Source of the DNA: Laetmonice hystrix
Lineage: Eukaryota
Reading direction: 5' to 3'
DNA: 64,000 bases
Assembly (NCBI GenBank): GCA_965235115.1
Contig: OZ249436.1
Location: forward strand, 58,342,001 to 58,406,000
Part shown: positions 5,433-56,338 of the stretch, piece after piece
Position numbering within the stretch: the stretch's first letter is position 1
Layout of the letters: each line of letters starts with the position of its first letter
Notes under the pieces: generated by a model
What the model saw: the letters and a program-made list of their open reading frames with translations, nothing else
What the model was told of the DNA's origin: nothing
Database searches by the model: none
Made by a program: the position numbers and the translations under genes

Positions 5433-6266
5433 TCAGTGTGACACCTTCTGAGGGACCGTCCCATAATATCCCACAAAATGCAGTAGTGTCGTTTTTCGTA
5501 CGACAATTATTCGACAAGCAGTTTTGTTATAGTCATTTACAGATTGAATTCTCGGCGGTCCTCGAGCAGGATCACGATGGCACTTGTCTTGTGACAATAG
5601 GCGCACCTGGAGAGTTCCCACCGCCAGAGGCAGGCAAACCTCCTGACTTGTAATTGAGTTGTCACGAGTGGTAATGATCGGGCCCAGGTCCCAGAGGCTC
5701 TGCAGACACCAATCCCAACGAACAAGTCTGCGGCGAATATCTGTCCCATGCCCCAATTCTGTGCCATGACCATTAAAGCGAGATTCTTGCCATAAACTGT
5801 CATGTTTGGAATCTGGTTTCGGTAAGCAACAAAAAAAAAGACGTTCAAGACTTGATATTTTCACCGAAGTTGCACGATTCAAGGCTTGATTTGACTGAGC
5901 ATCAGTTAGAAGCCAGGGGGCAGACTTGTGCAGCTCAGCGTTGTCCAATTTGAGCACTTGTGATACGGCAATATCACACACTATTTAGGACATCGTTCGT
6001 CCACAATGGCCCCTTGCTACTAGCAAGCAGATTGTGTAAACACCATTCTGATTGAATTCCTTTCGGCAGGTCAACAGGGCATTGACGGCGAGAAGCAGGT
6101 CGGAGGATGGTTTGTAATCTGGCACGCAGAGTACGCTGCTCAACATCCCAAAGCACTGCTTAGAGCATCTGAAGAGGACAACGGTTTGGTGATGGGCCAT
6201 TTCGTATTCTACAATATCCATCCCAAAGGGAGGATGGATGTGCTGAGCACCTTCTCCGCAGCCTTT
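5433..6266 (-). pseudogene. Probable decayed coding fragment, product unknown
   Basis: ORF-track entries 5985..6221 and 5433..5981 are in the same frame, separated by one TAA, and the frame is open upstream to about 6266: 278 codons with one internal stop. No motif recognised. Confidence 0.35.
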
Positions 6267-6892
6267 CTATATTAGTGTGATCCCTCGTAAAGTATTTTTC
6301 ACCTCAAACTCACAACAAAAATAGACTTTGCCATTGCTTGCAAAAATTCTACGAGCATTCTTAATTCTCCAAGCCATATATTAAGAGCCATGAATAATTC
6401 CTTTCTCCAAAAGAATACAACATAACCTTTTTACGGACATGTTAAGACAGTGATCCAGTAGTCTCATGAGACCAAGTAGACAAGAATTGTAAACCGCATC
6501 GCATAACAGTAAATATGTTAAAATATTTTTGTCGTAAATCTCTTGTATTCTCCTGCGGATCTACGTTGCCAAAAAGAGAAATGCTTCGATACTCAAATGG
6601 AACGAGAACAATTGTACACAGGATCACAGCCAAGAGAGTAAAATAATTATGTATGAGCGAGTTGTACTGCATGGGAAACACTCATGATGGATTCCCTTAC
6701 CTGCGGTTGTGTCGAATAAACAGCTAAGAAGATGTAACATGCGGTTTTGGGTGACGAATACTTTAAAGATTTGATAACTGCGTTAATTACCGGTGGTAAT
6801 TATGCTAGCACTGTAACACTGGAGTTCTTACCCCCCCCCTAAAAACTCGATTTTCTCGTCTAATTTTCCATGAACTAGTTTTTCTCTTTCTC

Positions 6893-6934
6893 TAACATCA
6901 GCATAGTAGTGTTAACATCAGCATAGTAGTGTTC
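6893..6934. repeat. 20-bp tandem duplication
   Basis: TAACATCAGCATAGTAGTGT x2, exact. Confidence 0.9.
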
Positions 6935-9717: not shown

Positions 9718-9929
9718 GATTACGTTATTCGTGGCAATATGTGAGCCTGACGCTGTCCAGTAATTGGGACGGCCTAGTTCAAGAAACGATGCAGTAATCG
9801 TGCGGTAAGTGACAAGAAACGAGGAACACCGCATTTACATTGAGGTCTCCAACCTTATCTCCATGATTACCGCCAGACCCTTCTACACCATTTCAATTAC
9901 TGATATTTCTCTGGATCATACACCGTGGC

Positions 9930-10623
9930 ATTGTTTATCGACCCTCCGGATATTTTCATGGGTCCTTCACGCTGCTAAGTGTATTGTTTATCGACCCTCC
10001 GGATATTTTCATGGGTCCTTCACGCTGCTAAGTGTATTGTTTATCGACCCTCCGGATATTTTCCTGGGTCCTTCACGCTGCTAAGTGTATTGTTTATCGA
10101 CCCTCCGGATATTTTCCTGGGTCCTTCACGCTGCTAAGTGTATTGTTTATCGACCCTCCGGATATTTTCCTGGGTCCTTCACGCTGCTAAGTGTATTGTT
10201 TATCGACCCTCCGGATATTTTCATGGGTCCTTCACGCTGCTAAGTGTATTGTTTATCGACCCTCCGGATATTTTCATGGGTCCTTCACGCTGCTAAGTGT
10301 ATTGTTTATCGACCCTCCGGATATTTTCATGGGTCCTTCACGCTGCTAAGTGTATTGTTTATCGACTCTCCGGATATTTTCCTGGGTCCTTCACGCTGCT
10401 AAGTGTATTGTTTATCGACCCTCCGGATATTTTCATGGGTCCTTCACGCTGCTAAGTGTATTGTTTATCGACTCTCCGGATATTTTCATGGGTCCTTCAC
10501 GCTGCTAAGTGTATTGTTTATCGACTCTCCGGATATTTTCATGGGTCCTTCACGCTGCTAAGTGTATTGTTTATCGACCCTCCGGATATTTTTATGGGTC
10601 CTTCACGCTGCTAAGTGTATTGT
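9930..10623. repeat. 53-bp minisatellite, 13 copies
   Basis: Unit TGTTTATCGACCCTCCGGATATTTTCATGGGTCCTTCACGCTGCTAAGTGTAT starts at 9932 and recurs every 53 bp to 10568. Variation is limited to CAT/CCT, ACC/ACT and one C>T in the last copy. No spacers. Confidence 0.97.
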
Positions 10624-13600
10624 CTACAACAGACGCCAGTCGAGCTCCTGTAGCCTTCCGAGCTGTAACAGTCACACATGTAGACCCAAGTGATGACTTT
10701 CCTTGTGATACACGTAGGAGGGGTTGGTAAATTAAACAAATATCCATCATGGTGATTGGCAGCGAGACTGTAGGTAAACATAACAGTAAGCTGGATGTAG
10801 GGTTTGTGTGATCGATTGGATCGTTCTCACTCTTACTTCCGATCCTCTATCCCTCTCCTCATACGGATCCATTCATAAAAATAGGAAGTTTGACCAGCTC
10901 CTTTCAGACTACGAAGATACATTTGTATAGTGGACAACATCCTAGTTGGTAATATCCCCGTCGAGACTGGTTACGGAGTTAGGAGGGGGAGTTCAGATCA
11001 GAATATTCAGCCTTTGACTGCTAGTTACTGAGATGTAGGGCTATTGACAAGGTATAATTATTGGCCTGGATATTTCTGGATCCATCAGGGGGGTATTGTG
11101 AATCTGTCAGGAGCCAGGCAGTACAGCTGGACCCACCTGCCTCTGAAACCATTTACTGCCACATCACCAGCACACAATTATAGCCTGGTCCTACCTGCCA
11201 TGCCCAGTTGGGGTGTTTAGGAGAGGGCGGCTGGCACGTTGGGGAAGAGGGACATAACCGTCCACGTTAACTGTTATACTGCTTATGTCCCGGTAAAACG
11301 GGCTAATCAAAACACTTCTTGTTCTAAAATCTAGAACATTTTCAAACAATTCCCTCCGCATAGGAAGGTGCTAAATATACAATGTATGTAACACAGAGCC
11401 AAACTAGAAATCGGTTGGGTACAATTCTTAGATGATGGAAAACTGAAAATGTATGGGCTAAGAAACTATTTCATCGTAGATATTTTTCATTTTGTAAAAA
11501 ACTCACCTGGATTGTACAATATTTATCAAAATTCGGCCACCTCGGATTCTCCCCAAGGTTTAATTTTTATCTGCCTTCAGAATATGCGACTTACATTCAA
11601 ATAGCGGCGTGTCCACAGAACGGGTAAGGGGGGTATCAGGTTAACAGATGCCAGTGGTTAGGCTAATGAGAAAGTTCCTCTGCTCTGTAATTATGCTAGC
11701 ACTGTAACACTGGAGTTCAACGGTTGAGCCCTAGCCAGTTCTGTTCCATTAGTGAGAGTGCAGTAACCCAACAGCTCTGGCCAAGTTTTCTAGGAAAGAC
11801 TAAGTGCATGGCATGACACTTTATGCCTGTAATTTACAAACGTTGCCAATATCCATTAGGTATGTTTTAATTTGTTAATTATGGCACATACACACGAAGT
11901 CTTTTTTTTTGTACCACAGAATTGATTGATACGCTCAGCCTAGATCCCGCGGGGGCTGTACCACCGCCAATTTGGCAACACTGGGAAACAGCCTTTAATT
12001 TGGCGACTAAACCATGACCAAGTTGAGAGCCGGCCAATTGCTGGCATTTCAGACACGATACTTGCAACGGTTTTATGGCAATTATATCGCGTTGACTTTC
12101 CAGCTCATCACTCACATTCCCCCATTTTAACAGCAGTCATTTTTTTCATGTCTGGATGAGCCACTCTTCCAGGAAGACAACGAAGAACAATCGGAATTCA
12201 TCCATTACTGGCACAGATCGCCTAAAACTTGCTCTATTTCTTCCCACTCTGTTGATACCAATGAGGCCAGGTAAGCATGGCTGATATGGCGAGGCTGACA
12301 AACGTTGGTGATGGTGGAAGTAACCCAAGCTCTTGAATAGCTCTTGAATCCAAACGGTCCCCCTAACTCACCCATCCCCACGTGTTCTTCTGCACGTCGG
12401 GATCTCTGTCACTTCGCGCTTGTTGTGGAGGTTCCTGCACATATGGTCCGATTCGCCAGGGTTCAACCAGTTCGCAGTGGATTGCCGGGGAGACCAGAGT
12501 ACTCAGGCTGGTCACCAGTGATGAATTAAGCCAGGCAGGGCCGGTTGCCAACCAGGAATTGCTCAGGCATAATTGCGGCACCTGTGGACACAGGCCGGGT
12601 ATCCCACATAAACCAGCCAGCTGGGGGTTGTCCGTCCGCCGCCAGCCGCCAGGTCATGCATCCGTCCGGGATTCGAACACGTCATACATATTTTCATAGC
12701 ACAACCTTTGTTTCGAAATCGTATTTAGATACATGTCGTATTCCAGATTATGTACAATATAAAAACTTCCTGTTTGTCCTACTTTCAGGTGACGATGATC
12801 TACCAAGCTTAGAACCCCCCCCCCCTTTTCTTGAGTTATGGGCCTAATGGTGCATGCATGTGTTCAATTGTACCTGAAATATGGTACTCATTTAGCACGT
12901 TAACAATCCTAATAAATTTTAACTTGTCTGATTCACAGTATAACTCCGGCAGATACTAAAGAGGATGCATATGTTCATTAGTAATTATTCCACTAATATC
13001 ACTGTCTGCCTGTCCAGGGGAGACCAGCAGAGTAACGCCCGCCCGGTTGCTCCGGATCAAAACCTTCATGTAATCTGCCGCCAACCGTAAAATCAATTCA
13101 GTCATTGTGTTTTAACATGGTGCCTCGTTTGGCTATAAACGTTTCAACTTCATCATTGCTGCCATACCAAATCTGAGTACATGGCCTTCATAATAAGCTC
13201 AATGAACCAAAAGTCTATTGGCTTTGACCCCATTGTGATAACAAGCCCTATCAATCAAGTGCCTGTGCGTAACGTCTGACCGGACACTCTTCATAGCACG
13301 GGGACCATTTCGCCCAGCGCAGATACCATAAATCTTCTGGTCACCAGTGCCAATTACCCATTGTCTCCACCCTTATCTATTGCCTTGCAAATATCAGTCA
13401 TCTCCATAGCGAAGAGATCCTCTTGTGGCCATCTTTAAGAAAAGGAGCCACTGGATGCATGCAGAGAGCAGGCGTTATTATACTGGTGGATTCGCCATCT
13501 TCCACCTCCCCATACTTCTGATCATCATAAATATAGGTCTGATGGCCAGGCTGTGTATAATGAACGTTAGCGATATGACTGTCTTGGTTGCGAGGGTTCT

Positions 13601-14856
13601 GCTGCTAATACCGGGGCGATGGGGCGGGGGGGGGGGGGGGGGGTCCTGCGCCCGTGTGTCTATGGTCAGATCAAGCCAGACGCCGTCGTGTAGACTGTCG
13701 TAATGAATCCTCCCTCAGGAATGTAACGCTGGTTCGGGGGGTTCTGAAGTAGCATGTCGACAAGAACTAACGGATATCTTCTCATTAGTCCGCGCGTCAT
13801 ATCAGACAGGTCAGCACATCTCTAGCCCTCTTTTTCCCTCTTTCTCCTCAAGATGTCTAGTCTCTCCAAGGTGCCAGTGTCCATCCTCAGGCAGATCTCG
13901 GACATGTGTCTGGAGGGTATTAGTCCAATATGTTTGCTCTAATAAAAGATCCAACATTACCGATAGCCTAGAGGCATCTTGGCGTTACTTTCGGCCAGTC
14001 GGCGTTGAGAGGAAGAAGCTAATACATAACCACTTAGCAAGTCGTCCTCTCCTAAACCGGTCGAATAGTGAAATACATCTTAGAAAGCTAAATTAACATT
14101 TTGCTTCTCTCCCAAGACCCAGCATCAACGTAGGGAACCAGCAGAGAATCAATGTATCAGCGGAGACCATTGTTAGGCCTATAGCTTAGACCTGCCAAAT
14201 GTATTCTGGTCTTGGCAACAGGTTTCATGACGCTCCATCAGCTCCGCCTCCCTAGTCTTCCAATGTATTTTTAATCGCAATCTAACCACTCCCCAGGGGA
14301 ATTTTAAAGGAACGGAGCTAAGAGAAAGTTAGTTATGCAGGTTGTCCAAAGTTTGCAGCAAATGATGAAAAATGACTGAGATTATACCACTGCCTCTCTC
14401 AATAATTCAGGATAGTTACATTGTAAAGCTCTGTACAGAGCAGAAGGCAGACAGGAGGAGAAGACGAATGGTAGCCCTGACTCGAAGACTTAGGCACAAA
14501 GAAAGAAACCACATATCATAAGAACAGTTATTATAATAGAGAGGAGACTCAATTAAAAAAGTCTGTGTTCCCCTCTGACGTTTGATCTGTTCTAGCGTTC
14601 ATACCAAACGTCTCTCCCGGAACGATTACGTCGTCAACGCCCCGGAAATCACTTCAATACAAATCGATATGAACAATGATGGGCGACACCTCACGCCCTG
14701 ATTGCTTGCATACGTTCTGCAATTATTGCTATTGACTGTGGCCCTGTAGGTTAGAAGACGCTGACCAGCTGACCTGACGTTCCACATATATTCCAAATAT
14801 TCAGTTAATTGTCCTCCGGGTTTTTCTTATGTCAAGAAACTTATTCAAATCAAGTT

Positions 14857-46800: not shown

Positions 46801-47451
46801 TGCCCAACAGATGACCGCTGGTCAGGCTATCCACCCACGTACACACGCTGATTGCAGTTGGTTGGGAGGTAAGTGTAATAATTCCCTCTGAGAGGCAGAG
46901 GTGGGGGACACACATGCAGGGTTGTGGGTGGGTGACAGCTGCAACATGGAACTGCCATGTTCTTCGGCGAGGTCATCAGTTGAATGTGCTGTAGGACGTC
47001 TTGGAAGGGATCAGATATCATGATATCCACAAACTGGCATGTAGCGAAACTAGCGATAAAGCTAAAAAGTCTTGATCCATTGATGTTATACTGTTAACAA
47101 TGACAATGCCTATATTACAACCTAGACAAGGTTGGCTGCCGTTAAAATGACGCCTAAAGTTGCATGAACGGTCTATTCTAGGAATAGTTTCAAGAATGAG
47201 CAATGCCTGATCAGATTACTTCTAGTTCTGATGAACTTCTGGGTTCATATGCAAGCTATAGTTTAATAAAGTAGTGTCTTGAAGGCGACATTCTAGAAGG
47301 CTGCCATTACGTCTTGGCATTACGTCACGGCATGACGAGATGGAGGGACCGGGACCAGACGGTGAGGAACAGACCATCCCAGTAGACAACAGTATAAAAA
47401 TCTGCTGCGTCCATGAAAAAATTACACAGGCGTGTCTGAGCGGGTCTCACG

Positions 47452-47649
47452 GTTTCCCCATGGGCTTGCTCATGGGGGGTCATTACCGCCCCCTCGTGGT
47501 TCAACCTGTAACCACATTTTAGACTATACCCGACAGTCCCTAAATCTCCCAAAGTTCCATGTTCTATTTTTCTTTCCGCCCACTGACCTTCTCACTCCAC
47601 ATTCACCGGTCAAACATCGCACAGAGCACACCTAAAACTAATATCTCAA
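47452..47649 (+). repeat. Split direct repeat A1 (198 bp)
   Basis: GTTTCCCCATGGGCTTGC...AACTAATATCTCAA, identical to 53040-53237. Confidence 0.97.
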
Positions 47650-47659
47650 GAGCAAAGCA

Positions 47660-48847
47660 ATGGCGCCAAAGAAAAAGACGGGAAAAAGACGCCAAAACCA
47701 GTCTATCTCAGAAGACAGCCCTGAACGAGCGCCGACGCCACCACTAGAGGCAGGGCACAAAAATGCAGAGCTTGACGAGCGCGTGAAAAAATTGGAGGGG
47801 CTGTACACAGACGTGGCAGCCATGAAGGCCAGTATCATGGACTTGACCGCCACGCTTCAGCGACCACCGAGGCTCCTCGAGACGACTACCGGGGGCCACA
47901 GCTCGGCTGTATCTACACCAGGCCGCAGACACGAAACACGGGAGCTCTCCGACCAGGCTACATGCGACGCAACTATCACCCTCCGAGGCACCGACACGGG
48001 AACACCGGAGTTTCGGGGCCGTCAACGACAGGCCAGTCAGACCCGGACACGCCACGGGTCAGACGACATTCCACACCCCAGTGACATACGCCGAGACAGG
48101 CACGCGTCCGCATACGTGCGCCAACATCTGCAGGACGACCGGCCCCAATTTTCCGACACAGAGGGTCAAGGTAATCTGTTTGATTCTCGTCCACGTAGAA
48201 ACATTATTAAACCATTCGAATATGTCGAAAGAGATGGACTCCATACACTTAGGCAGAAAGCTGATGTGCGAGATAAGCTCACATATGAGGAATATGTTAA
48301 TGCATTGGTGGCAATGATTAGGGACACTACGGTCACGGAACAGCGCGAAATCCCTAACCTTATTGAACACCTATATCAGGTCACACAGGATGCTATGACC
48401 GCACACTGGCCGAACGTCCTAAGATGGTCTAACACGATCTTTGACAAGATTGATCGGGCTGAACTGACATGGGCTGATAAGGATGACATACACTATGAAC
48501 GCATACGTCTCACAGTGGCTGGACAAGCGCGTCATTTTAACACAAATAAAATTGAAAGTGTAGAAGTCCCATGTCCAGCATTTAACCAAGGCGCATGTCA
48601 GGCGAACGCCGAGTCACATGTTGAGGGTCGAACATTATTCATGCACGTCTGCAGCTTCTGCCACGCGCTATCAGGGCGTCGCTACAACCACATGACATTA
48701 TCGTGTAACAAGCGCGCGACAGCGAGGGGCATGCAACCGGATCAGCGCATGGTGGTCATGGGTCAGCGACAGCAAGGTAACCATCAGCCACCACGTTATT
48801 ATGGTCAACATGGCCAACACCAATGTGACTCAAAAAACTACAGGTGA
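47660..48847 (+). CDS. gag: ORF1, Gag-like nucleic-acid-binding protein (395 aa)
   Basis: ATG 10 bp after A1. N-terminal basic NLS-like PKKKTGKRR and a short coiled-coil-like segment. C-terminal Cys/His cluster CPAFNQGAC...H...HVCSFC...H...C, typical of YR-retrotransposon ORF1. Confidence 0.85.
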   Translation: MAPKKKTGKRRQNQSISEDSPERAPTPPLEAGHKNAELDERVKKLEGLYTDVAAMKASIMDLTATLQRPPRLLETTTGGHSSAVSTPGRRHETRELSDQATCDATITLRGTDTGTPEFRGRQRQASQTRTRHGSDDIPHPSDIRRDRHASAYVRQHLQDDRPQFSDTEGQGNLFDSRPRRNIIKPFEYVERDGLHTLRQKADVRDKLTYEEYVNALVAMIRDTTVTEQREIPNLIEHLYQVTQDAMTAHWPNVLRWSNTIFDKIDRAELTWADKDDIHYERIRLTVAGQARHFNTNKIESVEVPCPAFNQGACQANAESHVEGRTLFMHVCSFCHALSGRRYNHMTLSCNKRATARGMQPDQRMVVMGQRQQGNHQPPRYYGQHGQHQCDSKNYR

Positions 48848-48864
48848 GCGTCCTCTCTGGGCGC
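48832..48864 (+). promoter_or_regulatory. Candidate -1 ribosomal frameshift signal
   Basis: A_AAA_AAC (48832-48838) is correctly phased in gag. After a 9-nt spacer comes the stem GCGTCC/GGGCGC (48848-53 / 48859-64). The -1 frame is the open pol frame. Confidence 0.6.
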
Positions 48865-50690
48865 CGACATGAAGGGTGTAGAAGCACTCAGCAACCACTG
48901 CCTGCACCACCTAATGTTATGTCACTATGCCTTACTAGGCCTGCAACAACGTGTCGGCTGACTAAGGGCAACACTCAGCAACTACGGCATACACCCGCTA
49001 ATGCTATGTCACTCTGCGTCACCAGGCATGCACCATCGTGTAGGCTGACCGAGGGCAACACTCAGCAACCACTGCCTACACCCGTCAATGCTATGTCACT
49101 CTGCGTCACCAGGCCTGTACCATCGTGTAGGCTGACCGAGGCCAACACTCAGCAACCACTGCCTACACCCGTCAATGCTATGTCACTCTGCGTCACCAGG
49201 CCTGCACCAACGTGTAGGCTGACCGAGGGCAACACTCAGCAACCACTGCCTACACCCGTCAATGCTATGTCACTCTGCGTCACCAGGCCTGCACCAACGT
49301 GTAGGCTGACCGAGGGCAACACTCAGCAACCACTGCCTACACCCGTCAATGCTATGTCACTCTGCGTCACCAGGCCTGCACCAACGTGTAGGCTGACCGA
49401 GGGCAACACTCAGCAACCACTGCCTACACCCGTCAATGCTATGTCACTCTGCGTCACCAGGCCTGCACCAACGTGTAGGCTGACCGAGGGCAACACTCAG
49501 CAACCACTGCCTACACCCGTCAATGCTATGTCACTCTGCGTCACCAGGCCTGCACCAACGTGTAGGCTGACCGAGGGCAACACCCAGCAATCACCGCCCA
49601 CACCTACCAACATTATACCATTACGCGTCACCAGGCCAGACAATAAAAATGCATTGTGTGCTGCACGCCCCAATCGAGGCAATGAAGCACCACCCCTTAA
49701 ACACACACCAGACTTTCAGGAGATTAGGAGAAGATGTGAATTGAACCTCCCACTAAACATGGGAGACGTCTATGGAGACGCTATCCCCGAATATAGGCGA
49801 AAGTTTTGGCCGAACGCCGATCGTAAGGTTCTCGGCAGTGAATTATACAACATTTATCAGAAAGTTAAAGCGTCAGGGTTACATAATTGCATCGGACAAA
49901 AAATGGTGGTCCCCTCGCAGCTAAACATCCCAGCATGGGAAAAATACCTCTCTAAAGATGGGGAGGACACTGAACTACTTGGTTTTATTAAATACGGCTT
50001 CCCATTAGGATACATTGGCCCAGTATCAGACACAACTGAAACTCCCAACCATGATAGTGCAGAACAATTCCCCGAGCAGGTTCATAAGTTCATTGACTCA
50101 GAACTCAATAGGGGCGCCGTCCTGGGTCCATTCACAGCCCCACCGTTTGTTGAGTGGTGCCATGTGTCACCACTCATGACTCGCCCCAAGTCGGATTTCA
50201 TAAACAGGAGAGTGATAATGGATATGTCATACCCAACTGACAAATCAGTTAATGCGTTTATTGCTAAGAACACTGTCTTAGGCACGCTCAGGGAACACAC
50301 CCTTCCTACTGTCGATAGTGTATTACGAGAGATAAATAGGATAGGACCAGGCGCAGTACTTTTTACCGTAGATATAGCTCGCGCATATAAAAACTTTCGC
50401 AGCTGCCCATTAGATTGGCCGCTGCTCACATTCAAGTGGAAACGCAATACATATCTAGACATAGCAATGCCATTTGGAGCCCGTGTGTCATCTGCACACA
50501 TGGGCCGTGTGGCAGGTGTGATAACGTCGGTACTAAGGAGTAGGGGCGTCTCTTCGTATATGTACCTGGATGACCTGATAGGCATTGCACCGAACATGAA
50601 GGAGGCCAGCCGGGGATTTACGGTGACCCGGGATCTGTTCGTTGAACTTGGCCTGCCAGAGGCATTTGACAAGACTCAGCCCCCAGCAAC

Positions 50691-50693
<3 letters not shown>
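48844..50693 (+). CDS. pol: ORF2 5' part: repeat linker plus reverse transcriptase, interrupted at 50693
   Basis: DIRS-type RT motifs SPLMTRPK, RVIMDMS, VDIARAYK, AMPFGARVSS and catalytic YLDD. The frame runs into the poly-T of a nested insertion; removing 50694-51033 rejoins it in frame as ...KTQPPAT-M-VKWLGI... (882 aa counted from 48844). Confidence 0.92.
48886..49637 (+). repeat. 87-bp in-frame coding tandem repeat (29 aa, 8 full copies plus 1 partial)
   Basis: Unit starts every 87 bp from 48886 to 49582 and encodes TQQPLPTPVNAMSLCVTRPAPTCRLTEGN. Copies 4-8 are identical; the outer copies are diverged. Confidence 0.97.
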
Positions 50694-50725
<32 letters not shown>

Positions 50726-51033
50726 TATGCATATTTTGACAGGGGAACCCACTCGACTTGTCAGCCGCCATTAATGTAGGGCCCTGTGATACATTAACGT
50801 ATTATACACTTTCACACATACATTCTACATTACCTTGTATGTACAGTATATAGTTTTACACATCCTTCTTAGCACTTAACAATTACATATAATATTTCTG
50901 CACTTACACATTCACTTTCGTATACAATTTAACCCATGCTTCTTAGAGCTTCTTACGAGATAAATCTATCTTGTTCCCCCTAGTGTCTTTCATTCATGTA
51001 CATATTATTATAATATTTTTTAATCTCTACTAT
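50694..51033 (-). mobile_element. Nested 5'-truncated non-LTR retroposon (LINE/SINE 3' end, L2/CR1-group-like tail)
   Basis: About 31-nt poly-T (50693-50723) is an antisense poly(A) preceded by AATAAA. TSD ACTAT at 50689-93 and 51029-33. A stem-loop (50739-50787, CAGGGCCC...CGGCTGACAAGTCG...GGGTTCCCCTG on the minus strand) lies just upstream of the tail. Confidence 0.85.
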
Positions 51034-51832
51034 GGTTAAGTGGCTCGGCATAGATATTGATACTCAAAACATGCTGGTCAGTATTCCAAAAAAGAAAATC
51101 GAAGAAACTCTCACAGAGGTGGAAAAGGTACGAGAAAAACGTTCTATTACCAAAAAAGGGATGCAGAGGCTCCTGGGTCGTATACTGCACATCTCCAAAT
51201 GTGTCACACCAGCACGTCTGTTTGTGGGTAGGCTGCTTCAGGCCTTCCGGGACGCGAAAGGTGGATATATTTGCCTCACTCGAGAGGACAAACGTGACCT
51301 TGACTGGTTCGTTAACTTTCTGCCTAAGTGGAACGGGAAGTCAATAATAAACAATGACTGTATCAGTAAGGAGATTGTAGCAGACGCGTGTAAATCAGGT
51401 ATAGGGGCCTCGGATGGGAACAGGTTCTACTCGGTAACGATCCCCACCTTTATGAAAGACATGCATATTTCAGACATTGAGGCAGTGAATGTACTTATAG
51501 CCCTCAGGACGTTTCTATCACAAGAGCAGATGGGCACGACTGTGATGGTTCGTTCCGACAACGCTGCTGCCGTCACTGTGTACTCCACGGGTAGGGGACG
51601 AGACCCACTTCTCCTCACATGTGCCCGGGCAGTATTCCTTTTGCAAGCACAACTGCAGGTTAAGATTATATTTCGACACACACCGGGCACCCACATGAAG
51701 CTAGCTGATGCATTAAGTCGCGCCCCGAACGACCGTCGCTGCAAGGCCGTAGCGGACGAGCTTGTCAGAAGCTACAACCTCATTGAGTGTTTCCCCGATA
51801 TAACTGACACGTGCATTAATCCGGGGATTTGA
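51032..51832 (+). CDS. pol: ORF2 3' part: RT C-terminus and RNase H
   Basis: VKWLGIDID, LLGRILH, and RNase H catalytic motifs VADAC, DIEAV, RSDN and H...LADALSR. Continues the upstream RT once the insertion is removed. Confidence 0.92.
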   Translation: MVKWLGIDIDTQNMLVSIPKKKIEETLTEVEKVREKRSITKKGMQRLLGRILHISKCVTPARLFVGRLLQAFRDAKGGYICLTREDKRDLDWFVNFLPKWNGKSIINNDCISKEIVADACKSGIGASDGNRFYSVTIPTFMKDMHISDIEAVNVLIALRTFLSQEQMGTTVMVRSDNAAAVTVYSTGRGRDPLLLTCARAVFLLQAQLQVKIIFRHTPGTHMKLADALSRAPNDRRCKAVADELVRSYNLIECFPDITDTCINPGI

Positions 51833-51861: not shown

Positions 51862-52829
51862 ATCCAGCGAGGGACAGGCTCATTAGGCAAGCTGTACAAA
51901 CTCAAGGGGCCGCCAGGGCACCGGGAACAGCTGCAAACTACAGGACTGCAGTCAGTGCGTATTTGGCGTTCTGTCACAGGTTCCAGGTTCATCACAAAGC
52001 CCCAGCAGTCCAGGACGCATGCATGTGTATTGAATATTTCTCGACCTTCCTTAAGTCACCAGCATCGATAGAAAATTATGTCTCCGCTATCCGACAGTAT
52101 CTTAGGAGGATGGTAGTCCAAAATAGTGCATTCGAATCCTATCGCGTCCAGTTGGCAATAGATGCACATAAACGACGGAAGGACCATACGCCACTACAAA
52201 AGCCACCGCTAGATACAGCATTGCTTAGGGCAGTCATGTTGGCAACAGTGTCACGCTACTTAGGGAACTCCGTCCGATTCGCATTCCTACTCTTATACTA
52301 CGCAGGCGCACGTCAATCGGAGGTGGTGCCCCCATCACAGTCCAGATTTGATCCAGACAGACACCTCACAAGGAAGGATGTGTATATTAAGGATGAAATG
52401 TTAATTATATCGCAGAAATGGGCAAAGAACCAGCAGCTCTATAATCAAAGTAGGGTAATCGCACTCCCACCCGGGCCAGACCCCATGTTGTGCCCAGTGA
52501 CTATGTATCGCCAGGTCATCAGAGATACCCCCACTAAGTCGCCGGTACAGCCTCTGTTGGCTCACACTGCGGATTATTCACCAGTCACAGCTAGGTGGCT
52601 GACGGCGGAATTGCGAACCATCATCCAGAGGTTGGGGGGACCCCATCAGACGGTCTCACTCCATAGCATCCGGAGATCCGCAGCCACTGACGCGTTCGCG
52701 GGCGGCTTCTCCCAGCTCCAGGTCCAGAACTTCGGTGCCTGGTCCTCTAATGCGTATAAGAAATATATAAGGCTAATGGATGCAAATGCGGTTTCAAAAT
52801 ACCTGGTTCAAAGATTGACGAGCTCTTGA
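51862..52829 (+). CDS. Tyrosine recombinase (YR)
   Basis: Catalytic set R (YYAGARQSEV), K (QKWAKN), H-x-x-R (LHSIRR), W (GAWSS) and Y (AYKKY). The frame is open from 51804. The ORF-track start at 51963 is TTG, not ATG, and the upstream APGTAANYRTAVSAYLAFC resembles the YR N-terminal helix. Confidence 0.92.
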
Positions 52830-52887
52830 GTAAATGTAATCGTACTTATTATTCAATAACCCTCACTTCATTTTAGTTTGGGGCTTG

Positions 52888-53039
52888 GCCATTTTATCAT
52901 AAGTCATATTTTAACCCATTATTTACCTCATCTCCTAAGTCGATTTTATTATTGTATCATGTTTTTAATATCCGGTGAAATAAATGTGCTATTCCCCAAC
53001 ACTTGTCTTATGTTGAGCCCGAGGGGATGTAGGGTAATG
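52888..53039 (+). repeat. Split direct repeat B1 (152 bp)
   Basis: GCCATTTTATCATAAG...GTAGGGTAATG, identical to 53311-53462. Contains AATAAA (52979-52984). Confidence 0.97.
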
Positions 53040-53237
53040 GTTTCCCCATGGGCTTGCTCATGGGGGGTCATTACCGCCCCCTCGTGGTTCAACCTGTAAC
53101 CACATTTTAGACTATACCCGACAGTCCCTAAATCTCCCAAAGTTCCATGTTCTATTTTTCTTTCCGCCCACTGACCTTCTCACTCCACATTCACCGGTCA
53201 AACATCGCACAGAGCACACCTAAAACTAATATCTCAA
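53040..53237 (+). repeat. Split direct repeat A2 (198 bp)
   Basis: Identical to A1 and directly abuts B1. Confidence 0.97.
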
Positions 53238-53310
53238 CCCACCCACCCGCTCCAATCTATAAAACTAGCTGTAAAGATACAATGTACCATTATTTCACCA
53301 CAGTAAAATT

Positions 53311-53462
53311 GCCATTTTATCATAAGTCATATTTTAACCCATTATTTACCTCATCTCCTAAGTCGATTTTATTATTGTATCATGTTTTTAATATCCGGTG
53401 AAATAAATGTGCTATTCCCCAACACTTGTCTTATGTTGAGCCCGAGGGGATGTAGGGTAATG
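53311..53462 (+). repeat. Split direct repeat B2 (152 bp), right end of the element
   Basis: Identical to B1. AATAAA at 53402-53407 is a candidate polyadenylation signal. Confidence 0.97.
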
Positions 53463-53630
53463 AGCTCCTCATGTCTACTCTTGGGTCTTTCCTGGGCCTG
53501 TCCTGAAGTGCTGGGCTGGCTCCTGCCACGCCCACCAGGTGCAGCCTGAGCTCCTCGCCTCTACTCCTGGGTCTTTCCTGGGCCTATCCTGGACTGAGCT
53601 CGCTCCTGCCACGCCCACCAGGTGCAGCCT
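53462..53630. repeat. Imperfect ~85-bp tandem duplication in the right flank
   Basis: GAGCTCCTC...TCTACTC.TGGGTCTTTCCTGGGCCT.TCCTG...GCTCCTGCCACGCCCACCAGGTGCAGCCT at 53462 and 53548. Confidence 0.85.
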
Positions 53631-56338
53631 GGTCGCCAATACACCGCCGTGTAATAGGTCCCACGTGCCATTTAACTTGTGCTATTGAAGGACATCCACT
53701 TAAAGCTCTATCTATATTGCCGATACTAGGACTCCATAGCCGCCAGAAACAACTCACTTACAATGTACCAATTGGCGATTTCCCTCGGGGTTGAAGATGA
53801 TGACTGAAGGGACAGTAATAATTGTCATAGCGACGAACACTGCTAGCTGCCGTTAGAATGACGCCTATTGTCTTTTTTATTGTTTTCTTGCAAAGTCCAC
53901 TGAAATCTGACTCACAACTAAACCAGTTATGGGGACAAAGACATCAGCGTACCGTAGAGGACCTCGCGTGAGGGTGTTCAATCTGCATTAGTCTCCACAC
54001 CACCACCTCATGCCTGCCGCAGACTAATTAGTAGCTTCGGAGTTGGCATAAATCATATCGTGGTACTACTGCGGCCCACCGCCCGCACGCCGGTCCCAAT
54101 ACAAGAGACCGTCGACATCCCACAGCAGGGACCACAGTGCTGAAACAGGAAGCCCAGACCTCCGTCATGGTGGGCTGTCAATATCAACCAGGCCTACCCT
54201 GCGGACCTTGAGGGTCCTCCTTGAGGGCCAAGACGACCTCAGGCGGGGTCCTCGTGCAAGAGGCTATATTGAACAGACCAGACATGCAAATGGCTCCTGT
54301 CTGCTCCAGTTTTGATACCCCTTCCAACCATACTGAGAGAAAGGCGGGGGGGGGGGGGGTGAAATTAATACCGGTACATTGAAATTATAACAAATGAGAA
54401 CACTTCACGCGTCGCTAAATTAGATTTTTCCTGCAAAGCAATCTAGGGTATATAGTAGATAACATAGCAGGTCCCCCACCGTGCTTGAGTAAATGTGAGT
54501 TCACTTCGTATTCGATCTCTACCGAATTGTGTGATTGATTCTGCGTGAGTTTATGTGGAGTTGTTGGCAATACATCCCACACGGGAGCTGTTCAATCATT
54601 GCCTGATAATAATACCAATTCAATTCACAAATCTCCTTGCGGTCTTTGATATCAGTCGGTGTTTATTTCATATCATGGATACCGACTGTGTACACTTTCA
54701 CTTAAAACATGAAAAATGCGCGAGATTAATTCTTCCGGAAATGTTGTCTCACAAGGGAAATGAAAAGCAAGACAACAGAAATCTGAATGAAATTCGATAA
54801 CATTCAACAGCTAATAAATGTGAAGGTAGAATTCTACGGTACCTTCAGATTTAAAACACCAGAGTCATTATACAATGATGTAAAGGCCCTGCCGAGCTGG
54901 CCTGCTCCAAGGAAAGCTACACATTATGCCGAGTCATGATAAATCACATCAATTTTAATTATTCATCACAGATTTTTCCCCCTCTTCATCAGATTGATGT
55001 GATCTTATAACTAGAGAGAGCAAGGCAGTGTCAAAGCTTCCTTCCTTCTGCCATCAGCTCTTCCTACAATAATATTCAAAACTGTCTCCGGATTGACTAG
55101 TTCATTAGACGTCTATTCCTGCACTACAGGAATTGTGCCTTCTGAAGACAAAATTACGAGGAGCTCTTCTCAAGTCTATCCATACCTCGTCAAGCTTTAC
55201 AGATCTTCCGTTGCTAGGGCGGTTTCTCTGCACTGCGATTAGAAGCTAGCAGACACATCGTCACTGCGAGCGAGTACATTTTTTAATCAAAAACGTCTTG
55301 AACTGGCATGATCCTCTTTGTCTGCTATCAGGGGACAGTGTCACTGTCTGAGCGCGCTACATAAGCTGCCTCAACAAAGCCGGTGATCACCACATTCTTT
55401 CACCCGACCGGTACTTTTTCTTACTTTCCTTTTTTTCTTTTTCTTGGACTTTTTTTTACGTGAACTCTGTGAAATATATTCCTTAGGACAGAAAGCCTCG
55501 TAACATAGCGGTGACAGTGATATAATCGAGCGTCATTTGACCAGAGGCTGACCACTGTCCCCCGTTAATGGTACCACCAACCTGTCTTACCGCCGCCCGA
55601 CTTAACTGGGGACATGACTAGAAGTAACTAGCGACTGTAACTTAAAGGGTATTAATATCATGACAATGCTGTCATACACAGGTACTTTGTCTATTTTTAA
55701 GGACAAATTCATGACATCCCCTTAACAAAGCATGGTCGGCAAGGACATTAAGGTCCCTGCTGTAGAAACACTCATAGCAACGCCTTGGGCACCGAGAGAC
55801 GACGAAATGTCACCAAGGCTTGGTTTCAATACCAGATGGTTCAAGTGCAGGCATTTAGTGTCAGCAATACAGCTCACCAGCACTGTTAGTCATGGCAAAG
55901 ATCCTTGTGATGACTTCTGGCAATGAATAATGACGGCTGGTTGCACTGTCTGGCTCACACCAAGAAGGTGGTCGTTGACAGTAAACCGCGCCATCCACCA
56001 CCATATAAAAGCTACTAGACTAACTTCCCACTCTGCACTTAAAGACTGGGACCAATTTTGGCGACATTTTCTTGCTTCTGACTCTCACTTGAAATACAGT
56101 CGCAGGCTACTAACATGATCTCGGAATATTCTGGTGGATCACGGAGCTGGAAGCTCGGAAGTTTAACCGACTTTCAGTGTGTCATTTCGTTCTCACAATA
56201 CAATGTACTTAGTCTTGACGGTTGCTTCCACTGAACTTTGACACCAAAATGAACACCATCCTGGCGTTACCACCTATATCACAATTTCTTTTGACAATCG
56301 TTGTACATCGATCAATACACAACGTGATAACGTCTTAA

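Follow-up and report, generated by a model that had tools for sequence, protein, structure and literature searches.

The element and its split direct repeats

The window, that is, the entire stretch of 64,000 nt of Laetmonice hystrix DNA analyzed here (contig OZ249436.1, positions 58,342,001 to 58,406,000 of the forward strand), is free of N runs and harbors a young tyrosine-recombinase retrotransposon of 6,011 bp at 47451/2-53461/2, which carries a hairpin at an internal repeat junction. The layout of the element is A1-[ORFs]-B1-A2-B2, with split direct repeats whose internal copies lie 3' of the recombinase gene. This layout is typical of Ngaro-type elements (PMC9210276, PMC8547959). The following features were assigned:

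47452-47649, plus strand: A1, 5' terminal repeat, 100% identical to 53039/40-53237
47660-48847, plus strand: ORF1, 395 aa, gag by position alone (from the ORF list)
48844-50739, plus strand: ORF2, 631 aa, with reverse-transcriptase domain (RVT_1, E 1.9e-6)
51032-51832, plus strand: ORF3, 266 aa, between reverse transcriptase and recombinase (from the ORF list)
51963-52829, plus strand: tyrosine recombinase, 288 aa (Phage_integrase, E 3.3e-4)
52888-53039, plus strand: B1, internal copy of repeat B, 100% identical to B2 (53311-53462)
53040-53237, plus strand: A2, internal copy of repeat A, 100% identical to A1 (repeat comparison)
53238-53310, plus strand: spacer between A2 and B2, 73 nt, with the motifs CCCACCCACCC and TACCATTATTTCACCA
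53311-53462, plus strand: B2, 3' terminal repeat, 100% identical to B1

Single shared nucleotides leave some of the repeat boundaries ambiguous by 1 nt. The identity of A1 and A2 extends over 47451-47649 and 53039-53237 (100%), and G47451 is common to A1 and the target, so that the start of A1 can be placed at either of two positions; likewise, one G is common to B1 and A2. The two motifs of the spacer, CCCACCCACCC and TACCATTATTTCACCA, are shared between the window (53238-53301) and the related element L001 (11199-11258), and might act close to the RNA 3' end in priming or as cis signals of another kind.

No Pfam match was found for ORF1. The RVT_1 match of ORF2 scores 28.2 bits, slightly below the gathering score of 29.6, and RVT_1 was also found in the genes adjoining the recombinases of relatives. 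Upstream of the reverse-transcriptase domain, an 87-nt unit (29 codons) is repeated in tandem and in frame about ten times within ORF2 (48798-49706); in the relative L005, 15-nt and 12-nt tandem arrays are located 5' of the recombinase gene (6058-6910). The recombinase ORF, which starts with TTG, encodes the R-K-H-R-[H/W]-Y residues of tyrosine recombinases, and the columns R117, K152/K155, H234, R237, W260, and Y268 are invariant in the alignment (12 relatives). ORF3 had no Pfam match, neither to a methyltransferase nor to RNase H; a methyltransferase was not matched in Pfam by any ORF of the element, even at E 10, and ORF3 is left without assignment. The absence of a methyltransferase domain sets Ngaro apart from DIRS1-like and PAT-like elements. 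Judged from its sequence, the element is a further member of the Ngaro kind, with the absence of the methyltransferase being short of settled.

The junction hairpin

The junction between B1 and A2 lies within a predicted hairpin, for which three features are of importance:

53012-53093, plus strand: junction hairpin with four helices (from folding; 100 bits with the covariance model R1)
53035-53039, plus strand: TAATG box, end of B, invariant in eight families, with the crossover directly 3' of it
53069-53073, plus strand: CATTA box in A, partner of TAATG (CATTA, CATTG, or CATTT in other families)

From the base upward, the helices consist of 53012-19 paired with 53086-93, 53020-26 with 53078-84, 53033-39 with 53069-75 (the helix of TAATG and CATTA), and the inner stem 53042-52 with 53057-67. 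A weaker basal extension reaches 53004-53104. The arm pairings that had been listed in an earlier note on this DNA are all present in the sequence at these positions; the inner stem, described there as 7 bp with an 8-nt loop, is also present but is predicted to comprise 9-11 bp with a 4-nt loop. As RNA, the region 53012-53093 has a folding energy of -51.7 kcal/mol (z -6.38), and as DNA of -22.6 kcal/mol (z -5.25); in both cases, none of 200 shuffled sequences folded as well. Among 1,185 sliding 90-nt RNA windows of the element, the hairpin window ranks first in stability. A search of Rfam with 52700-53600 did not yield a match at E up to 1.

The fold is specific for the B1|A2 junction, as had been stated in the earlier note: at the two outer borders of the element, the equivalent 82-nt windows fold unremarkably, with z +0.36 for B2|flank and z -1.16 for flank|A1. 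The last 28 nt of B1 form the 5' arms, whereas A1 contains the inner stem-loop and the 3' arms but lacks the 5' arms, and the tail of B2 has no pairing partner in the flank. Since B1 alone is followed by A, B1|A2 is the only junction that is able to fold.

The same hairpin in related families

A search of the full library with the recombinase yielded 3,408 relatives. As each 50%-identity cluster is represented in the library by a single member, the seven further loci for which the split-repeat 3' ends could be recovered by contig look-ups are distinct families; seven of the eight families, including that of the window, come from three or four host assemblies. The identities of their recombinases to that of the window are:

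L001, 54%; L003, 47%
L008, 41%; L009, 37%
L007, 35%; L010, 33%; L013, 31%

The layout A1-[ORFs]-B1-A2-B2 was also found in L003, L007, L009, and L010. B terminates with (G/C)TAATG in each of the eight families (CTAATG in three of them), and a CATT(A/G/T) box is present 24-38 nt into A. A reading of GTAATG as a 5' splice site (U1) was discarded in view of the three families with CTAATG. The nested architecture is likewise common to all eight families: an inner stem-loop that is wholly contained in A is enclosed by the TAATG/CATT helix, and the latter by one or two outer helices. The last 20-34 nt of B make up the 5' arms, and the first 49-62 nt of A the 3' arms and the inner stem-loop, resulting in a covarying structure of 70-100 nt.

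The z values of the junction RNAs were -8.4 (L001), -4.4 (L003), -9.9 (L007), -6.5 (L008), -5.0 (L009), and 0.0 (L010), and the junction RNA of L013 has an energy of -46.6 kcal/mol. None of 200 shuffled sequences folded as well as the native one in six families. In six of the eight families, no other 90-nt window of the element is as stable as the junction; in L003 the junction takes the ninth place among 638 windows, and in L010 it does not stand out. Further scans for relatives in metagenomes gave one short contig (L012, 24% recombinase identity), in which a weak junction-spanning hairpin has a different geometry, with the junction in the loop, and no further relatives were found in viral contigs. 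Four loci with related recombinases (L004, L005, L006, and L011) were left out; no split repeats were detected in them, and they look degenerate or truncated. On the minus strand of L004, a Crypton-like gene (12506-14059, Phage_integrase plus DUF3504) is located 3.5 kb from the Ngaro-like recombinase.

Covariation between the arms

With the boxes disregarded, the identity of the arms between families amounts to only about 53-58%, yet their complementarity is kept. When the B tail of each family was combined with the A head of every family, the summed energy of the native assignment was lower than that of any other among the 40,320 permutations of the eight families, the mean being -46.5 kcal/mol for the native combinations versus -33.0 kcal/mol for the chimeras. 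A covariance model (R1) built from the window and L001 found L007, L009, and L008 at E <=0.001 and L010 at E 0.27. L003 and L013 were missed with the default filters, and the pair counts thus rest on six families. In this six-junction alignment, which was fitted to the structure, 94.7% of the cells are canonical pairs, compared to 71% in shuffles, and 21 of the 33 pairs have changes on both sides; none of 2,000 partner shuffles reached any of the four measures. An alignment of seven hairpins with MAFFT and RNAalifold recovered the TAATG helix alone, because L003 and L008 were misaligned, and was replaced by the permutation test and the covariance-model alignment. The earlier note had named related families as the place to look for comparable junction-specific pairing; such pairing, together with covariation, is present in seven further families.

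Could the pairing arise by chance, or simply follow from A having G-rich promoter boxes and B a G/U-rich tail? The junction of L010, which lacks a significant fold, and the weak hairpin of L012 with its deviating geometry would be in accord with such a lack of function. However, the shuffling results and the first rank of the junction in most families speak against it, as do the permutation test and the covariation. The fold, rank, permutation, and covariation results effectively refute an origin without function, which we regard as hardly conceivable. Because the same hairpin with compensating changes is found in seven other families, the conserved hairpin can be regarded, on this comparative evidence, as a functional control element.

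The crossover point and the insertion targets

The DNA to the right of the insertion consists of a tandem repeat:

53463-53631, plus strand: target DNA right of the insertion, ~85-nt tandem repeat (repeat comparison, empty allele)

An empty allele was found in public reads, in which 47450 is joined straight to 53462, with a single shared G. The integration was thus precise and without target-site duplication. The contigs concerned (one sample, three runs) also show that the insertion is polymorphic and that the depth of the element is about 8 times that of the flanks. Between the empty and the occupied allele, 2 of 30 flank positions differ, the two substitutions being in the left flank. The left flank (47425-47450) resembles a diverged piece of the ~85-nt tandem repeat at 53461-53631. 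In two other copies of the element, the left flanks end in ...CTCACT and ...TTCATG directly before GTTTCC. The empty allele and these left flanks place the crossover immediately 3' of TAATG. The earlier note had located the element boundary inside the stem, and it indeed lies at the invariant TAATG within the hairpin, as the empty allele confirms.

The T of TAATG is invariant, whereas its pairing partner varies (A, G, or T). This invariance is not explained by pairing, and it points to a sequence-specific role of this part of the structure at the level of DNA. Together with the crossover exactly 3' of the box, it makes TAATG very probably a part of the recognition and cleavage site of the recombinase.

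In all six families for which a B2 flank is available, the host DNA next to the TAATG of B2 begins with A, followed by G or T (window 53463, L001 11418, L003 9474, L007 10671, L009 ~9879, L010 9623). In the window, this A is derived from the target, according to the empty allele, and a target preference at +1 is suggested. Two of the five reconstructed targets are inverted repeats. The target of L009 (5114-5173 plus 9879-9968) is a near-perfect palindrome of about 130 nt (-81.8 kcal/mol) with the configuration TAATG|ATG...CATCATTA, and is matched by the covariance model R1 at E 0.012; in L003, a 9-bp inverted repeat is located at the insertion point. These targets hint that the recombinase may recognize a hairpin-like or palindromic site. 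The L009 palindrome resembles the junction of the L009 element itself, and it may be the attachment site of another element or a foldback element. An isolated inverted repeat, GTAATGATCA...TGATCATTAC, with perfect 10-bp arms about 50 nt apart, was observed in L001 at 13611-13734. This repeat, located 2.2 kb downstream of the L001 element, has boxes identical to those of the junction helix.

The strand probably under selection

G:U pairs amount to 38 of 227 in the plus-strand folds versus 6 of 181 in the minus-strand folds. The plus strand is more stable by 4-23 kcal/mol in all eight families with RNA parameters, and also in all seven families examined with DNA parameters, although the minus strand still folds significantly in four of seven families. 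In L007, L009, and L010, a T:G wobble is found in the TAATG helix beside the crossover, and in four families a G:T pair is located just after the junction. The tolerance of wobbles and the avoidance of A:C argue against a two-fold symmetric duplex site as well as against a functional hairpin of the minus strand. In the simplest reading of these sequence data, selection acts on the sense strand.

Tyrosine-recombinase sites are typically inverted repeats, and the B tail and the A head might form such a palindromic, double-stranded attachment site, to which the recombinase or accessory proteins would bind on the circle junction, with the apparent pairing being a mere consequence of two-fold symmetric protein binding. 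The invariance of the TAATG and CATT boxes and the precise integration without duplication are in line with this view. Yet symmetric binding does not predict any preference of G:T over A:C, contrary to the counts of 38 and 6, and the arms are wholly different in sequence between families and nevertheless complementary. In addition, the crossover lies 13-19 nt from the dyad center, and the boxes are 24-38 bp apart, not 6-8 bp, so that an attachment site of this kind is very unlikely. A lox-like core centered on the junction was considered and rejected; ATG-N7-CAT is present in only three of the eight families, with the crossover at the end of the left box.

Another role at the level of DNA would be that of a folded single-stranded recombination site. 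Integron integrase on attC and XerCD on CTX phage DNA exchange one strand of a folded site, and the earlier note proposed that the folded junction is the donor site of the tyrosine recombinase. In this case, single-stranded cDNA or the extruded cruciform of a circle would fold at B|A, the TAATG/CATT helix would represent a duplex-like site, and one strand would be exchanged after TAATG. Several observations fit, namely the crossover exactly after the invariant TAATG, off-center in one arm of the conserved helix, the spacing of 24-38 nt between TAATG and CATT that is filled by a variable inner hairpin, the long palindrome at the L009 insertion with its match to R1, and the significant folding of the minus strand in four families. 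On the other hand, the 38 G:U pairs of the plus strand become A:C mismatches on the minus strand, including those beside the crossover in L007, L009, and L010, and we know of no plus-strand ssDNA intermediate of these elements. The known single-stranded cDNA of DIRS-1 is the antisense strand (PMC7192593). From the donor-site proposal, the location of the crossover point inside the hairpin is borne out by TAATG and the empty allele, whereas a single-stranded cDNA substrate fits poorly to the strand asymmetry, and we regard the folded ssDNA site as quite unlikely.

The asymmetry instead points to RNA, namely genomic RNA, as the structural form that would be selected, rather than minus-strand cDNA or a double-stranded palindrome, because genomic RNA is the sole single-stranded molecule of the sense strand that is certain to contain B1|A2. 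The control element is thus most likely an RNA structure.

The poly(A) signals and the hairpin

The internal copy of repeat B contains a poly(A) signal:

52979-52984, plus strand: AATAAA of B1, 27 nt upstream of the hairpin base (from the sequence)

The copy of this hexamer in B2 is located at 53402-53407. A GU-rich tract is present at 53003-53015, and TGTCTTATGTTG at 53004-53015 is paired in the extended fold. The distance from AATAAA to the hairpin base downstream of it is 22-48 nt in seven of the eight families (27 nt in the window, 27 in L001, 37 in L003, 22 in L007, 29 in L008, 48 in L009, and ~45 in L013), and the hexamer is found 50-74 nt before the end of B. The exception is L010, which has no canonical hexamer within 130 nt and the weakest hairpin of the families.

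In metazoa, cleavage usually occurs 10-30 nt after the hexamer, and a U/GU-rich element follows within about 30 nt beyond. By these rules, the expected cleavage position is immediately 5' of the hairpin, and the 5' arm would contain or adjoin the downstream element, with TGTCTTATGTTG as the candidate in the window. The structured region covers the zone that is expected for the cleavage site or the downstream element in seven of the eight families. It is the position of AATAAA 22-48 nt upstream of the hairpin base in these families that leads us to prefer the following interpretation: the downstream element may reside in the 5' arm, and by hiding it the hairpin would prevent polyadenylation at B1, so that the genomic RNA runs on to B2. 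We assign a probability of roughly 0.42 to this interpretation.

B1 and B2 are identical in sequence and can therefore be distinguished solely by what follows, that is, A in one case and arbitrary host DNA in the other. As A follows only B1, a partner strand from A is a logical way to silence B1 only. In the proposed mechanism, the hairpin would be a conserved cis-element of a Ngaro-type clade that is selected as a plus-strand structure in the genomic RNA. Once A2 has been transcribed, the hairpin would sequester the G/U-rich element that follows the poly(A) signal of B1, and cleavage and polyadenylation would be suppressed at B1 and occur at the sequence-identical B2, the terminal tail of which would stay single-stranded whatever host DNA comes next. 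The resulting RNA would carry the junction of B tail and A head internally, and this internal junction would be the sole template copy of sequences that are expected to be missing from both transcript ends. The transcription start would be located downstream of the A head; of the families, only L003 and L007 show a clear TATA box right behind the hairpin. At the level of DNA, TAATG in the third helix marks the joint that the recombinase makes between the element and its target.

Two families count against masking. In L003, the clearest GU-rich tract is located just upstream of the hairpin, outside of the stem, and in L009 the hexamer is farther from the hairpin base (48 nt) than in the other families. 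Masking of the element downstream of the B1 poly(A) signal, which the earlier note had offered as the alternative to the donor site, agrees better with the anatomy in seven of the eight families, but not with the tract of L003.

The hairpin might also serve a different role as RNA, either as a packaging or dimerization signal, which would mark only the read-through, junction-containing RNA as genome, or as a guide for the reverse transcriptase (pausing, template switch, strand transfer), which would act when the internal junction is used to restore the ends of the element. In retroviruses, hairpins of the R region are known to aid strand transfer. Such roles draw on the same conservation, covariation, and plus-strand bias as masking, and the restriction of the hairpin to junction-containing RNA would make it a selective tag. 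However, they leave unexplained why the 5' arm is always directly downstream of AATAAA. Moreover, neither a Gag-binding motif nor a conserved loop sequence was seen, the apical loops differing between families. A role of this kind is, in our opinion, possible but unlikely.

Comparison with known systems

The attC sites and the attP(+) of CTX are imperfect palindromes that fold on one strand, with boxes in the stem, a variable terminal structure, and the crossover in one arm near a conserved box. The junction hairpin appears analogous in its fold, its boxes, its variable terminal structure, and the location of the crossover in one arm; it is an imperfect palindrome, folds on a defined strand, has stem boxes that are conserved, and varies in its terminal structure. 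The delivered strand differs, however. The plus strand folds best in all eight families, that is, the sense strand is favored, whereas the first cDNA strand is the minus (antisense) strand. Furthermore, the host is a eukaryote, and the element is a retrotransposon. As at loxP and FRT, joining is precise and conservative and involves a tyrosine recombinase and a site with inverted-repeat symmetry; in contrast to these sites, the junction has boxes 24-38 bp apart, no central crossover spacer of 6-8 bp, and arms that are not conserved in sequence.

In retroelements such as HIV-1 and foamy virus, RNA structure is an established means to choose between duplicated poly(A) sites (PMC2645353, PMC3694450). 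The HIV-1 poly(A) hairpin and foamy virus resemble the present case in that two poly(A) signals are identical and the distal one is required, and also in the local RNA structure around the signal, which in foamy virus is formed by the LTR and acts with U1 snRNP. Unlike in retroviral poly(A) control, the hexamer lies outside of the hairpin here, and the partner strand is provided by the neighboring repeat A, so that context alone sets the fold. In contrast to foamy virus, no splice-donor or U1 component is evident in the present element.

In the internal complementary region (ICR) of DIRS-1, the joined ends of the element are present as an internal copy, and this region is essential for completing retrotransposition (PMC7192593). 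Like B1|A2, it is an internal circle-junction sequence, but the DIRS-1 ICR is complementary to inverted-repeat termini, whereas B1|A2 copies the joined ends directly and is, in addition, self-complementary. Integration of the DIRS-1 type occurs at a short junction motif and without target duplication (PMC3266345). The conserved motif is TAATG here and an NTT trinucleotide in DIRS-1.

By the features compared, the hairpin resembles retroviral poly(A) control, the DIRS-1 ICR, and attC/CTX, and is a member of none of them. The junction might still be a eukaryotic counterpart of attC/CTX, with a recombinase that cuts the folded strand or cruciform after TAATG and prefers genomic hairpins or palindromes with a TAATG-like box for integration, as suggested by the L009 target, and with a direct junction copy that is at the same time a complementary splint; we regard this as rather improbable. 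If true, the palindromy would enable the direct copy of the junction to serve also as a splint of the DIRS-1 style for the element ends. In the accessible literature on these elements, including an overview of 2026, split repeats are described, but a junction hairpin, a palindrome, or a TAATG terminus is not; the primary Ngaro reviews may mention pairing. Judged from the accessible literature, the junction hairpin has apparently not been described before.

Implications

The replication of tyrosine-recombinase retrotransposons is still largely a paper model. The findings described above bear on the read-through of the internal terminator copy, on the rebuilding of the element ends, and on the site and the substrate of the recombinase. 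They provide three handles on these steps, namely a covarying structure of 70-100 nt that is present at the internal junction only, an invariant TAATG that pinpoints the crossover with single-nucleotide precision, and a strand bias indicating RNA as the selected form. In addition, the signature of TAATG plus hairpin should aid the automatic annotation of the boundaries of Ngaro elements.
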